A stretch of DNA of 64,000 bases. It comes from Selaginella moellendorffii. Lineage: Eukaryota; Plantae; Lycopodiophyta. A program made the translations under genes and the position numbers. Shown one piece after another: positions 15,589-25,900 of this stretch. Each line of letters starts with the position of its first letter. The stretch's first letter is position 1. The notes under the pieces are model-generated. The model was not told where the DNA came from. It saw only the letters and a list, made by a program, of their open reading frames with translations, and ran no database searches. The DNA is taken from contig NW_003314265.1 of the NCBI RefSeq assembly GCF_000143415.4, forward strand, positions 944,405 through 1,008,404, given 5' to 3'.

Positions 15589-18500
15589 CTAGCTACTCAA
15601 GAGCTCGTTAAACCTCTTGTAGCTGTCCGAGCTTGAAGACCTCGGGCTCGTCACTTCCAAAACTTCCAAGTCGATCCCCTCTGGCGTGAGCACGAGCAGC
15701 TTCGTGTCCTCTGTCCACGGCCGAGGAATTTCTTCTAGTCCAGTCGCTGCTGCCTGAGTGTTTTCATCCAGCCTTTTGTCCAGCCTTGCCACTAGCTCGT
15801 CCAGTCGTGCCTCTGGCTCCGTCTGAGGTAGCACTGCCTCTTCTTCGTCCCTGGCCTTCGGAAGTAGCTCGAGCTCATCTCCGCTTCTCAGGTACTTGAG
15901 CTCATGCCTGAGCATAACGTCCTCTGGCTTTGAAGTTGCAGTATCACAGGCAGTCTCGGCCTCCTTGGTGTACTGCTGGTTGTATCTCTCCACAAAACTC
16001 ACCTGGATCGACTTGGGGAAGTTGCCACCTTGGAGCCGAGAAGCAAACGCGAGACTCTTTTTGTAGTCCCCTACCACGTCTCTGTGCAAGGAGATCTTGC
16101 GCAAGAGATAAACCGTCGGGGAGGCTCGCTGTTGGGACGCATCAGCTTCGTCCAGAAAATGCTCCGGAACACCCGACGCCCGCGCGGCCACCTTCCGACC
16201 ACTCGAGGGGAAGAAATGCATAATACAGCACCGCTCACTCTTACGTGGTTGCCCCTTTGCCACGCTCACTCCTCTCTGTGGCGCGCTTAGTCACGCCCTA
16301 AATGTTTAACAACTAATTCTAAATTAATAACGCTAAACTTTATGTTTGTGCTCCTTATAATTTCTTTCTTATTTTATTCATTCTCTTTAGTATTATGGCT
16401 AGAATGGATATATTGATCATGCTCAAGATAGTATTCTTTCTTTTTCTGATTTTATTGAGAGAACTAATAATAAAGTAAATTCTTTTACTTTTTGTATTAG
16501 GGTTGGTCTTCTTCCATAAGAGAGAGAATGTGAAAGATGCCATCAACAAATGAGATATCAATTTGATAATCAAGGTTGTAAAGATGGTTTAAAGTGGAAT
16601 TATAAAAATTGCAATACCACAAGATCTCTTAGAACTAATACATGGTTTGCAAATAGTAATTTCACATTTGCTCAAATGCTTAGAGTGATGTATTGTTGGT
16701 GTATTAAAATATCACAAGATCAAGCTCGTATTAAGTGTAATATTAAAAGTGAGCATACGACAACAAATTGGTCAAACTTTTGTCGTGATATTTATGTTAT
16801 CACATTACATCAAGGTAGTCAAAAGATTGGTGGTCTAGGAAGAATTGTGGAAATTGATGAAAGTACATTTGGTAAGTAGAAATATAATCATGGTAGAAGA
16901 GTAGAAGGTTAATGGGTCTTTGGAGGAATTGAACGTGATTTAGATTGAATGTTCCGATCATACTACACAAACTTTAACTGATATATTATATACATATGTT
17001 GAACCAGATAAGTTCTATTTCTATTATTATTCTTAACTAATAATTATAATTAATTTTTTAGGAACAATTATATATAGTGATTGTTGGGCTAGTTATGATT
17101 TAGAGTGGTTGAAACAATTGAACTTCACTCATTATACAGTTAACGACTCCCAGAATTTTGTTGATCCTGTGATTGGAGTTTATACAAATTATATTGAATC
17201 AACATAGAATGTAATGAAAAGATCCCTTCCTTGCTATGGTACAACAAAAGGATTATACAGCTCTTACTTTCAAGAATATATTTGGCAAAAAATATATATT
17301 GAAAGAAAGGAAGTTGCATTTAATATTCTAAGCAGTCATATTAAGCTGCACAATCAAGATAATGCTGTTATAGTAGAATTAATAATATATTTGATTTTGT
17401 ACTTTTAAATACTTACAAATAGTTGAAAATAATGTACTAGAACAATCTTTAATTTATAGTAATGAGGTGGCATGCGCATGTAAGCAATGAGGTGGCATGC
17501 AAATCCAAATAAGCAAATACCCTAAATAAGGGGGGTGCTGTATTATGCATTCTACCCCTCAGGTCCACTTCCAGTAGAGACATGTATTAAGCTCTCACGC
17601 AGTCGGGGAGCCGCCGCTGACAATGGTGAGAGAGCCAGAGCAAACGTGGTTCGTTCGTCAAGATGAGGAAAGGGAGGCAGTTGGCAGAGCTCCAGCGCGT
17701 AGAAATTGGCTGCTAAGTCGCAAAGCTGTTCCAGCCTGCGGGAGGAGTGTCTTGATCCTTATACCAAGCTTGACGAAGTCGCAAGGTTGGGAGGAGGCCA
17801 GTGACTGGGACTCGTACTGGCAGCATTTGTCACCTCCGCTGTAGCGTCGTGGAGTGCTTTGCTGAAGAAGTAGTCTCCGGGCCCGGCTTTGGTTTCTTCC
17901 CGTGACAAGTTTAACGTAGAGTAGAGCTTTTCTGCCACCAAGTCACGGAGATCCACAGCATGAAGCTCTGGCTGAGCCGGCGCTAAAGTCGCAAGCCACT
18001 CAATACCCCTGGCTAGAGTCCCACTGCAGTAGAACTTGTATTCGCTTTTCCCAGTGGTCAATAAAACTATCCAGCTGCTGATCTTGTCGCCGTACAATCT
18101 GTGTAGCTGAAGCAGCAGCCCCACTCTTCTTCTGGTGGCGGCCTTCTGTTGAGATCGCCTTCATCTGATCCAAAGCCACTTGAAAATACCAACAGTGGCA
18201 CAGAGGTCCCGATCGGAAGAGATTCCACCAGTGAATGTAGCTTGCTGCGCATCCTGCTTAGAGGCAAGCCTTCGTCAACCAAGAACAAGAGAGTGCTTGC
18301 CCCGTTGATACTTGGCTGGAAGCTTCTGTCAAGACCAATCTCGCAATGGTACATTTTCGACGTTGCTCGAGATGTAGCATGCTACTGTGTTCCCTTCCAG
18401 ATTTCTGATCAGCTTCGACCTCAGCCACGATGCCGGAAGCTCACTGCCTCGTCCCTTGGACGAATTGTCTCCCATGCAGAAAACCAGTTTCCAGTAAATA

Positions 18501-18745
18501 GTTCTCGCCCGTGGATTCCTAGCTCTGAGAACCAGAGAAACTATTTCTGACACATCCAAGAACTTCCAGATGCTGTTGAGAGGTGAGACTTGATGCATTT
18601 TTAAGTCTTCTTTGGCGAGTCCTTGCTTTGTGACTTGAGAAATGTTCTTTCATCCATGTTGGATCAGCAAGCCAAGGATCATTGATGATAGAGCTGCTCA
18701 GGCTTATAGTTTTCACAATCTTGCAGCCTCCATGATAGCATCAAT
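15589..18745 (-). pseudogene. C-terminal fragment of a SAC3B/GANP-like gene, frameshifted and split by a Merlin element
   Basis: WKFLDVSEIVSLVLRARNPRARTIYWKLVFC...SWLRSKL, GASTLLFLVDEGLP...LHSLVESLPIGTSVPLLVFS and LARGIEWLA resemble the plant SAC3B C-terminus. The pieces lie in different frames and no 5' half is present. Confidence 0.7.
16209..17556 (+). mobile_element. Merlin (IS1595/ISXO2-like DDE) DNA transposon, decayed
   Basis: TIRs GGAAGAAATGCATAATACAGCACC and GGTGCTGTATTATGCATTCTACC. Transposase remnants: CERCHQQM Zn-ribbon, KIGGLGRIVEIDESTFGK*KYNHGRRVEG*WVFGGIER, PGTIIYSDCWASY, TVNDSQNFVDPVIGVYTNYIEST, YFQEYIW. Degenerate TSD ACTCGAGG / CCTC-AGG. Confidence 0.88.
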
Positions 18746-19997
18746 CTTACATTATATGGCATTGTAGATGTATACTTGGACCTCATGTCATCCCCTCCTC
18801 TTGAAATGATGGAAGACTATCAAAGTTCTCTTATGAATGGGCTAGGATCTAGAGGAATATTAAAAGGAGGCATTAGTAGATTATAGATGGTTCTAGTTGT
18901 TTTTAATCCCTTTGAGCAAAACATTTTAAGTGTTGTATAGGCAAATTTTCTGGAGGATTAGGTTGCTGGATGTCATGTCGAACTTTATAAATTTATGGTC
19001 CAACTTACCATAACACTTGATATTGTCCTTTCCACTGACTAAGGAGCCCCTTAGATAAACCACATGTTGTAAGATTGGGAAATAGACTAACACCAAATCA
19101 TCTACTTTGTACTTTACAAGTGGAAAATGATGAAAGTTATAGCATTGTTATTGTCCTATTTGTATACGGCTTAAGTGTTCAGTAGACTTTGCTTGGACAA
19201 ATGGAAGAATGATTATCAGATATTGATCCCACAACCTAGCATCAACAATTTGTGGCAATTGCATAAGTAAACCAAATTTCATTGGTAGTATTGGATAATG
19301 ATCATATAAAAGTTTATATGGTGAAGCATCAATAAAACTTTACACCTTTGTGGCATACGCATATTGAAAAGATGGTAAATAGCAATCCCAATCCAAATGC
19401 TAAAAGTTTATATACTTTATGATCATTCTTTTGAAAGTTCAAACAAGACATTCCACCAAACCGTTTAATTGGATGATAAACACTCATGAAAGTGTGGCAT
19501 ATCCCCAACTGAGACGTCAAAACTTGAAATGCTTCAGCGTATAAATGTGGGACCATTATATGAAAGAATTCACTCCAGACAAAATTGTTAAAACACCACT
19601 TGATTGAGGAAGAAGTATCCAACAACAGTTGCAGATGCACTAGTAAAATATTGACTTCCATTTAGCAAGTTAAATAGTTAAAAGTAATAATGACATACTC
19701 ATTGTTAACAGTCGACCATGGAAAAGGCCCCATCAAATCAAATGTCATCAACTTAAATGGATGAGAAATTACAATTAACTCTAACCATCCTTCTGAAACA
19801 CAAGGGGGAGTATTACGAACTTGGCACCAAATGCAGTTATGCATATACTAAATAATATTATATTGCATCTCCGGCCAATATAAAAACTACCCTAACTTCT
19901 TGGTCACACGATAATATCCCATATGCTTGCTTAGAACAAAAGAATTATAGTAAACATGGAGAAAATATAGAATAAAGATTGAAGGCACCACTAGCCA

Positions 19998-22900: not shown

Positions 22901-25900
22901 ATATTAATTGTCAAATAACTCACATATTGAAAGGTGCTATATATACCATCATTTAAAAATTTTAAAAAAATTTACATACAATATAAATGTATCTTATGTT
23001 ATTGATAAAATAATATAGGGTATAAGCCAAGTAGTTTCTGGCCTCCGGACCTGGAAACTACCCGAGGTCGAGATCGGGCTCGCCACCTCGGGCAGTTTCT
23101 GGCCTCGAGGGCCCGAGGTTATTCAAATAACCTTGGGCCGCCGGACCGGGAAACTGCCCGAGGTCGAGGTCCGGCTCGCCACCTCGGGCAGTTTCTGGCC
23201 TCGAGGGCCCGAGGTTATTCAAATAACCTCGGGCCCCCGGACCCGGAAACTGCCCGAGGTCGAGGTCCGGCTCGCCACCTCGGGCAGTTTCTGGCCTCGA
23301 GGGCCCGAGGTTATTCAAATAACCTCGGGCCCCTGGACCCGGAAACTCCCCGAGGTCGAGCTCGGCCTTGCCACCTCGGGCAGTTTCTGGCCTCGATGGC
23401 CCGAGGTTATTCAAATAACCTCGGGCCCCTGGATCCCCAAACTGCCCGAGGTCCAGCTCGGCCTTGCCACCTTGGGCAGTTTCTGGCCTCGGGTGAGCCC
23501 AATAGTGCCACTAACATCATATTGAATCTTGTGGTTGAGTAGATTTGCAATATATTCCTAGGTATTGATTTGAAACTCCATTAGCAATGCAAGTTTTGCT
23601 TGAGCTCTATTACTCACTAGATAGTATTGTGACTGATTGCACAATAAGTAATGGTTATATGGTGGAGTTAGCATATAATTCTAGTAGATTGGTGTTTGCT
23701 ATTAAAAAACATCATTTATTTAAACACTGGCTTAGAGTTACCTCTAACCTCAAGGAGGTAATTTATATTTATTAAGATTTCATTACATATTTAGTTTTGT
23801 TTTATATATCACACTCACCTTGAGTTTTTAGAGTTTGAGGTTTTTGAAGTCTATTAAAGTATGCAAAGGCTATGGCTTAACAAATGCAAAGTGAGCACAA
23901 TCCCAATATAGACGGAGGCATAGAAGGAAATGACATGTTGATGATGACATAGAAGAAAGTTAAATGAATCCTTACTTGAGAATAAAATCCTATCATATAT
24001 CAAATCGTCAGTAATAGTGTTAGTGTTAGTTATCAATGTTAATATCATATTCCATAATTGCAAATTGGTATTCTCACATGCAACCATCAATTTGTAATGT
24101 TTGTGTGTTGTCATCTCATCCTTCAATATCTTATCAACAATTATATGAAGTGATAACACTAATTATGTAGCAGTTGTGGCAATGCTCAAGAAAACTATAA
24201 AAGCCCTTAAAAATGTCCTGATTTAAGAAAAAAAAGGCATATTAGGCATCTTAGAATTAAACTCTCAATTTGTTCATTAATTCCCATTAAATCAAGAGTG
24301 AGATCTTCTATGGATTGGGTGTAATAGACTTCAACTTGAGGAAACTCCCCATCATTGACTTTGTCAATAGCCTAAAAAACCCATATTCTACACTAGCTAA
24401 TGCATTGTTTCCCATGGGGATGTTGTTCCTCACCATGAAGAAATAGTGGGTATGTGTCTATAATTTATTCTTGAATTTATTGTACATCTACACTTTCTAC
24501 GCCCATTGTTAGGCAATTTAAAAAAAATTTGTAATGAAGACATTTGTCTTGTCCAAAAAAAAAGTAACATATTAGACATTGAATATAATAGCATTTTGTG
24601 CTTTTAAGTAGTCTTGCCATACCAAGAGCAAGATCTTGCAAAAACATGTGGCACTGCTCTTGAAGCATTGAAGGTAATCACTCTTTAGTAACAATATTCA
24701 AAATTTTGTATACAGGGAGCTTTAGTTTGACTTTATAAAAACCTTTAATAGAAAGAAAATTGTAATATGGTTATGGTGGAGACGAATGTGGAATGTTGGT
24801 AAACCTTAGGGATGAAGGTAGAAACTAATATGAGATGTTAGGGACTTATAGATGAGTAGTAATGACTTTCCTTTGAGCCATTTCTATATTAAATATTTTA
24901 GGAGTGTAAGGATAATAAAAATACTATAATAACTAACTTTTTTGGAATTTATATATTAATTTTTAGTCTTGGGAATAAGGTTTATTTATTATGACACTAA
25001 TAATACTCAGATTCTTGAAATGTCAATCTCAGAAATGAGATTTCAAAATCATAGTCTATTTATGAATAGAAGAGCTTCTAGCATTCTAGATACACATGCT
25101 AGAATATTTATCATTTTAATGACCATCTATATATATATTTTTCTACACTTGAACTTTCTAGAAAAATACACAAGGAAATATAAATTATATTATAGTAGTA
25201 GAGTATGCAAGCACACGGGCCCACATGCATTCTCTTATGTGAGATTACCTCTCAAGCTTGGAAATGTAGATAAACTTGATTCTTTGATGTGATATCACTT
25301 TTGAGTCTTTTAAAATATTTTGATTTCTATTATTATTGTTCACAAATGACTCTCAAAAAATGCTAGTGGGGATTCATCCAAAAAATATACCTTAGTTTTC
25401 TCATATAGGAGGATTGTGCTATAGGCAAGTAAGTAGAGTTTTTTATATGAATTACTATATAATGGTCTTTACATTCTAATAAGGACTAGAAGTGTAATAT
25501 GAAGATTGTGATAATGAAAGAAAATTAATATTCTCACATTGATTTGCCCTACAACTCTTACTTACAGATATTTTATTTTACTTAAGAACTCTAGAATTAA
25601 TGAATTTTATGTAAATATATATTGCCTTACCATTATACACTATAAATGGCTACCCTTCAAAAACTTTATCTTGATTCATATTAATGAATTGTAAGAAAAT
25701 CAAAATATGATAGTTGTAAAGATAGTCTTTAGTAAGAAAATAGATAGGTTCTCATGAACTTAAAATTTTCTAAATAACTCAATCTAGTAGAAACTTTTGA
25801 CCTAGGTATTCATATATTTTAATATTTTAAAGTTTGTCAGAACCTTAAATTTTTTAACATAGATTTTCTTTATAAGAGTTATAGTTGACTACATTGACTT

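Follow-up and report, generated by a model that had tools for sequence, protein, structure and literature searches.

A decayed Merlin-type transposon of Selaginella moellendorffii with a predicted 54-nt intron in its transposase gene

Eukaryotic DNA transposons of the Merlin superfamily (Feschotte 2004, summarised in PMC8101967) are characterized by terminal inverted repeats (TIRs) of at least 24 bp that start with GG, target site duplications (TSDs) of 8 or 9 bp, a DDE_Tnp_IS1595 domain and a DDE triad distributed over three blocks, and those described so far are without an N-terminal Zn_Tnp_IS1595 domain (PMC8101967). The bacterial insertion sequences IS1595 and IS1016 (ISXO2-like) have a homologous DDE domain (NCBIfam NF033547) and an 8-bp TSD. 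Merlin has been reported from S. moellendorffii, S. kraussiana and S. tamariscina, with no sign of sequence contamination (Lopes et al. 2021, PLoS One 16:e0251133, PMC8101967), and is otherwise almost absent from land plants (PMC8101967). The S. moellendorffii family is listed in Repbase as Merlin-1_Smo; its domain was called truncated, and functional copies were said to be absent (PMC8101967). Here we analyse one copy of this family, at positions 16209-17557 (plus strand) of a 64,000-nt stretch of S. moellendorffii DNA (assembly GCF_000143415.4, contig NW_003314265.1, positions 944,405 to 1,008,404), which as a whole is called the window.

The element and its transposase gene

The segment 16209-17557 is a dead, mutation-riddled cut-and-paste DNA transposon of the Merlin type, belonging to the Merlin-1_Smo type of family of S. 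moellendorffii. This class II element of 1,349 bp resembles the eukaryotic Merlins in its GG-starting TIRs, in the 8-bp TSDs seen in its family, and in a DDE_Tnp_IS1595 domain with the triad in three blocks. The following features were identified within it (positions are those of the window, and profile positions refer to the alignment profile described below):

16209..16232, plus strand: 5' TIR, starting with GG (repeat search; paralogous contigs without the element cease to match exactly at 16208)
16395..17007, plus strand: transposase exon 1, broken, with ATG at 16395, a C2C2 zinc-ribbon-like motif and the first catalytic D at 16856-16858 (profile positions 24-209)
17008..17061, plus strand: predicted 54-nt phase-1 intron in a Gly codon (G|GA), donor AT in this copy, acceptor TTTTAG (gap-free junction on the profile, GT donor in the family, composition)
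17062..17381, plus strand: transposase exon 2, broken, with the second catalytic D at 17079-17081 and the catalytic E at 17196-17198 (profile positions 210-301)
17458..17500, plus strand: pair of subterminal 18-nt direct repeats (AGYAATGAGGTGGCATGC), shortly before the 3' TIR (repeat search)
17534..17557, minus strand: 3' TIR, its reverse complement starting with GGG (repeat search; paralogous contigs match again from 17557)

The borders are marked by a perfect 18-nt inverted repeat (16215-16232 and 17534-17551), which occurs twice in the whole window and nowhere else, with 0.05 occurrences expected by chance. Stretched to the tips it forms a 24-nt TIR in which 20 of the 24 positions match and both ends read GG, in agreement with a preliminary description of this DNA that had proposed TIRs of about 24 bp beginning with GG. 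That description had placed the element at 16209-17556; its left end was retained, but comparison with other copies favours 17557 on the right, with a 1-nt ambiguity in the terminal base of the right TIR. Family copies elsewhere start with GGAAGAAATGC directly after an 8-bp TSD, and end with GCATTCTACCC directly before it. The same borders emerge from paralogous contigs of the flanking host DNA, including an RNA-type contig of 3343 nt, in which the match is lost at 16208 and regained at 17557-17571, i.e. at the tips of the TIRs. The GC content is about 29% (27-34%) in the transposon, compared to about 55% (52-56%) in the surrounding host fragment.

The transposase is encoded on the plus strand and is spread over three frames by stops and frameshifts. 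The motifs ...CERCH...KNCNTTRS..., VEIDES, KYNHGRRVEG, WVFGGIERD, TLTDILYTYVEP, GTIIYSDCW, TVNDSQNFVDP, TNYIES and ...YFQEYIW... could be read, which include all those named in the preliminary description (VEIDES, KYNHGRR, WVFGGIER, SDCW and TVNDSQNFVDP..TNYIES). The catalytic residues D (in VEIDES), D (in YSDCW) and E (in TNYIES) align with the same residues in ten relatives.

Protein comparisons support the earlier assignment to the Merlin/IS1595 type. The NCBIfam family IS1595 (NF033547), a profile of 215 positions, is matched by two pieces of the transposase in collinear order (1-72 and 135-180). A phmmer search with a piece of 119 residues against 1.84 billion representatives gave 1301 matches at E <=0.001, none of them above 50% identity, and the best named matches are ISXO2-like transposase domain proteins of Cordylochernes (a pseudoscorpion) and Heterosigma akashiwo, and a protein of Gigaspora margarita. 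Pfam PF12762 is passed by seven related sequences, i.e. six full-length proteins and an exon-2-like open reading frame (ORF) of the record L001 discussed below, at 49-79 bits with a cut-off of 27. Ten relatives were aligned into a home-made profile of 309 positions, on which the window pieces, scored singly, map in order at 24-41, 46-161, 163-172, 174-182, 192-209, 210-254 and 259-301 (E 1e-40 for piece b, in a search of 7 sequences to which these E-values apply). A word-index protein search with the 119-residue piece gave no candidate, which is uninformative on absence, as its length window of 65-208 residues excludes full-length relatives.

Some observations weigh against this identification. 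Pfam gave no match on five stop-free transposase pieces, because the domain fragments are too short to score, and the two NCBIfam matches (E 4e-4 and 6e-3, 16-20 bits per piece) are far below the curated cut-off; Merlin membership therefore rests on the relatives and on the home-made profile. This low identity to the bacterial profile also sets the element apart from the bacterial IS1595/IS1016 sequences, as does its eukaryotic nature with a predicted spliceosomal intron. At the insertion site, comparison of the flanking octamers did not reveal a clean 8-bp TSD: ACTCGAGG and CTCAGGTC, immediately outside the two ends, are alike only when a slip of 1 nt is allowed, and the degenerate TSD of the preliminary description could not be confirmed. 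In addition, an expressed paralogue of the host DNA has 88 letters in place of the transposon, so that the two do not form a simple pair of filled and empty sites. About 66-80 nt of host DNA next to the transposon seem to be missing, and this loss beside the element is probably the reason that a clean octamer duplication is lacking. Perfect 8-bp TSDs were found by eye in four other copies of the family in the PMC8101967 supplement (GAGGAGTC, GCCTACGC, AAGAATAA and ATCCAAAA).

Contamination or an assembly artefact was rejected as an explanation, and its probability is negligible. A contig of 874 nt without any differences crosses the left junction (16036-16909), the paralogues break exactly at the TIR ends, and no evidence of contamination was reported for the S. 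moellendorffii genome (PMC8101967). Moreover, two DNA runs of the same organism contain 647 and 504 contigs at least 90% identical to the stretch (range 90-99%), i.e. hundreds of diverged copies. In these runs, contig joints that skip 890-994 nt of the element interior represent internal-deletion derivatives. The multicopy contigs and the published genomic copies support the proposal of the preliminary description that this is a resident family.

Comparison with the other copies reveals how the gene has decayed. Exon 1 has lost 1 nt after 16407 (other copies have an extra A) and 14 nt after 16953 (where other copies have TATGGTTCCGGTAG), and is interrupted by TAA at 16517 (CAA in the family), TAG at 16877 (TGG or CGG), TAA at 16910 (CAA) and TGA at 16946 (CGA). 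Its length fits that of the intact exon 1 of the PMC8101967 copies (613 nt = 628 - 1 - 14). Exon 2 contains TAG at 17205 (TGG in the family), and the ancestral stop TAA at 17379-17381 now reads TTA, other copies having A at 17380. All five premature stops, as well as the donor lesion at 17008, are C>T or G>A transitions relative to the family, consistent with the methylation-type decay suggested earlier.

A second intron at about 16474-16500, considered possible in the preliminary description, was rejected. It would measure only 27 nt, and the stretch is coding and conserved (V-N-S-F-T-F-C-I-R): better-preserved copies have it within an uninterrupted ORF, ahead of the block GLL...C that is conserved in the relatives.

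Upstream of the DDE domain, at 16526-16627, the window copy has a zinc-ribbon-like motif of the form CxxC...(~19 residues)...CxxC, in which the third Cys has become Tyr. Most eukaryotic relatives also have this motif, and in carrying it the S. moellendorffii family and its relatives differ from the eukaryotic Merlins as described in PMC8101967. Pfam made no call for the motif on the stop-free pieces; language-model neighbours hint at Zn_ribbon_IS1595, as a lead only.

The two 18-nt direct repeats inside the 3' TIR are possibly transposase-binding sites, a putative function. Near the 5' end, at about 16258-16268, the word TGCCAC(G)CTCA resembles these repeats in inverted orientation, and word and repeats may together be candidate subterminal binding sites of the transposase.

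Among the relatives, two predicted proteins of Cordylochernes scorpioides, of 1611 and 1750 residues, contain 11 and 8 separate matches, respectively, to the N-terminal piece of the Merlin transposase. Both appear to be gene models in which numerous copies of the transposon have been strung together.

The 54-nt segment between the exons

Judged from its sequence, the segment 17008-17061 is highly likely to be a short spliceosomal GT-AG (U2-type) intron, of which the donor has decayed in the window copy. In this copy the segment reads ATAAGT...TTTTAG, and its removal joins V-E-P-G-T-I-I-Y-S-D. All other family copies that cover position 17008 have G there, and thus read GTAAGT...TTTTAG (six contigs in each of the two DNA runs), while the PMC8101967 copies read CCAG|GTAAGT...TTAG|GAACA at the borders of the segment; the predicted exon-exon junction is ...GAACCAG joined to GAACAATT. 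On the home-made profile, the piece that ends in ...YVEP finishes at position 209 (P), and the piece that starts with GTIIYSD opens at position 210 (G). The 17 codons plus TAA (in frame, at 17034) in between have no counterpart, as the ten relatives, L001, S. kraussiana and S. tamariscina are all contiguous here. The segment has a GC content of 11% compared to 30% for the coding sequence, with none of 814 coding windows of 54 nt being as AT-rich, and contains a branch-like site CTAAT, its A lying 21 nt before the AG. Introns of S. moellendorffii are reported to have a short length distribution that is sharply unlike that of other land plants and clusters with those of fungi (PMC6157073), and short introns have been reported from its expansin genes (PMC3680112). 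The decayed GT-AG intron of the preliminary description is well supported by these data.

The segment could instead be a disabling insertion that became fixed in a non-autonomous subfamily, moved in trans by an intron-less autonomous Merlin, in which case the published truncated domain would be literally true. Two observations count against an intron and for such an insertion: spliced RNA was not seen in one RNA-type run, in which depth is zero across 16316-17393 inside the element, and the length of the segment is a multiple of 3, so that restoration of the frame cannot by itself tell an intron from an insertion. The lack of the 54 nt in S. kraussiana, S. tamariscina and L001 would also fit a late addition. 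An insertion of this kind would nevertheless have to read GTAAGT...TTTTAG at a CAG|G proto-splice site, be more AT-rich than any coding window, and include a branch-like CTAAT. Every copy seen has the segment. Position 17008 is covered by six contigs in each DNA run, and in the S. moellendorffii file of PMC8101967 exact words retrieve the acceptor junction 13 times, the donor junction 4 times and an intron-less junction not at all, although this is a weak test that misses mutated copies. Exon 2 has also retained the second D and the E, and by manual reading is open for 106 codons in one copy. We therefore consider the insertion unlikely and infer that the intron is spliced. As it lies between the first and the second D of the triad, only a spliced mRNA could yield an active enzyme.

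The related elements were compared at the intron site. The S. kraussiana and S. tamariscina Merlins can be aligned at the DNA level, and their local protein matches that of the window copy (T L T D I L Y T Y V E P G T I I Y S D C W). Copies from S. kraussiana (PMC8101967 supplementary file 53) read T L T D L I Y Q Y V E K G S T I Y S D C W without interruption, and a copy from S. tamariscina (supplementary file 57) reads Y V A R G S I M F S D C W, also uninterrupted and with one extra T. They differ from the S. moellendorffii elements in that the 54-nt segment is absent and the Gly codon unbroken, the number of codons being equal to that of the spliced S. moellendorffii reading. The nearest relative outside Selaginella, L001:4001-4940 (ENA ERZ25073694 ctg132017, 386 kb), is 49-52% identical; exon 2 of the window copy is 52% identical to its PF12762-positive ORF, and the intron site reads ...HFIFPGTKIISDCW... 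without interruption. The L001 element is itself a pseudogene, interrupted in frame by stops that follow ...VEIDESKF and ...KRKFH. L001 lacks the TIR core of the window element, and a search of it gave no convincing pair of TIRs. Since the intron is missing in S. kraussiana, S. tamariscina and L001, parsimony suggests that the S. moellendorffii lineage of the element would have acquired it, at a proto-splice site CAG|G, after the split from the S. kraussiana and S. tamariscina lineages.

The same comparisons bear on a recent horizontal transfer into S. moellendorffii from a non-plant donor (fungus, arthropod or protist), in place of an old residence in the genus. Such a transfer would agree with the non-plant origin of the nearest named relatives (Cordylochernes, Gigaspora, Heterosigma), with the GC content of the element, which is well under that of host exons, and with the near absence of Merlin from other land plants (PMC8101967). 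It is nonetheless improbable, as S. kraussiana and S. tamariscina have DNA-alignable elements with the same local protein, identity to the representative proteins never exceeds 50%, the closest representative L001 (49-52%) has no TIR in common, and the intron is of the host type.

Published copies, an apparently open copy and the host fragment

Merlin-1_Smo and the S. moellendorffii copies of PMC8101967 are the same family as the element described here, and that supplement includes the window copy itself: both a 28-nt left and a 25-nt right junction word of this copy are present in the S. moellendorffii contig file, and the full locus of 16209-17557 is printed with its flanks. The file has 110 headers, some of which are overlapping extracts of one locus. 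The family, its occurrence in the species and the window locus are thus already known, and the novelty claimed in the preliminary description does not hold. Judged by eye, the published ORFs share about 85-90% identity with exon 1 of the window copy. They terminate in ...YVEPGKFYFYYYS (...YTYVEPGKFYFYYYS), within the 54-nt segment, and their CD-search match is flagged as incomplete at the C end. In contrast to the truncated domain reported in PMC8101967, the domain is complete once the intron is removed. New here are the predicted intron, through which the published ORFs were read, its lack in the elements of S. kraussiana and S. tamariscina and in L001, and one copy that by manual reading is open in both exons.

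The latter copy is the first record of PMC8101967 supplementary file 55 part 1 (NW_003314411.1_249986_252639; element at about 250,986-252,000 of NW_003314411.1). It has an open exon 1 reading of 218 residues, a 54-nt intron GTAAGT...TTGTTAG, and an exon 2 that a manual codon parse by eye found open for Gly plus 105 codons (106) up to TAA; its perfect 8-bp TSD is GAGGAGTC. According to this by-eye reading, the copy would encode a complete DDE transposase of 315 residues if spliced. A true intron gained at CAG|G in the S. moellendorffii lineage of the element, combined with an intact copy on NW_003314411.1, and hence an autonomous, recently active plant Merlin, is a tentative proposal that we rate at somewhat under even odds.

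We propose the following history for the window copy, with a probability of about 0.85. In life, the element would have moved itself by DDE transposase-catalysed cut-and-paste, generating 8-bp target duplications. Its single gene would have consisted of two exons around a 54-nt phase-1 GT-AG intron of the short, AU-rich type, and encoded a transposase of about 315 residues in which a C2C2 zinc ribbon at the N terminus is followed by an ISXO2/IS1595 DDE domain. The element presumably inserted into a duplicated piece of a GANP/SAC3-like gene that is probably dead, and has since become non-autonomous by decay: premature stops arose at five places, two deletions shifted the frame, the donor changed from G to A, and the gene's stop codon was lost.

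The host fragment flanks the element on both sides:

15589..16208, minus strand: host gene fragment, C-terminal ORF up to the stop (ORF reading; covered by an RNA-type paralogue contig that is about 92% alike)
17558..18716, minus strand: host gene fragment upstream of the insertion, frames broken (ORF reading; weak MCM3AP_GANP match at 18332-18598)

The MCM3AP_GANP match (E 0.028, weak) is the sole support for the SAC3/GANP (SAC3B) label, and a language-model atlas search with the host ORF of 205 residues gave no usable match. In the DNA runs the flank (15700-16208 and 17558-18000) is multicopy in the genome, with 6-13 paralogous contigs per position. The 3343-nt RNA-type contig mentioned above represents an expressed paralogue of the flank and has in-frame indels of 9 nt. 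The host fragment is probably a duplicated, dead piece of a GANP/SAC3-like gene.

Elsewhere in the window, a GC-rich tandem array was found at 23040-23491, with a 96-nt unit in 4.7 copies (94% matching) and long overlapping ORFs on both strands. The ORFs at 19332-19844 (minus strand) were considered as a retrotransposon integrase, and this was dropped as there is no Pfam support.

Implications for Merlin in plants

The window copy as such is an ordinary dead member of a published family, and carries no weight of its own. The residual value of the analysis lies in a correction of annotation and in a small evolutionary point. If the above reading is correct, the sole accepted Merlin family of vascular plants owes its description as truncated and dead to the translation of a 54-nt intron, and the gene becomes complete when it is read in two exons. 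The intron is lacking in the sister elements of two other Selaginella species, so that a mobile element would here offer a datable intron gain, and its host is one whose introns are unusually short. A spliced intron together with an intact copy would contradict the statement in PMC8101967 that there are no functional copies, and if one copy is truly intact, Merlin would become testable as an active transposon of plants.

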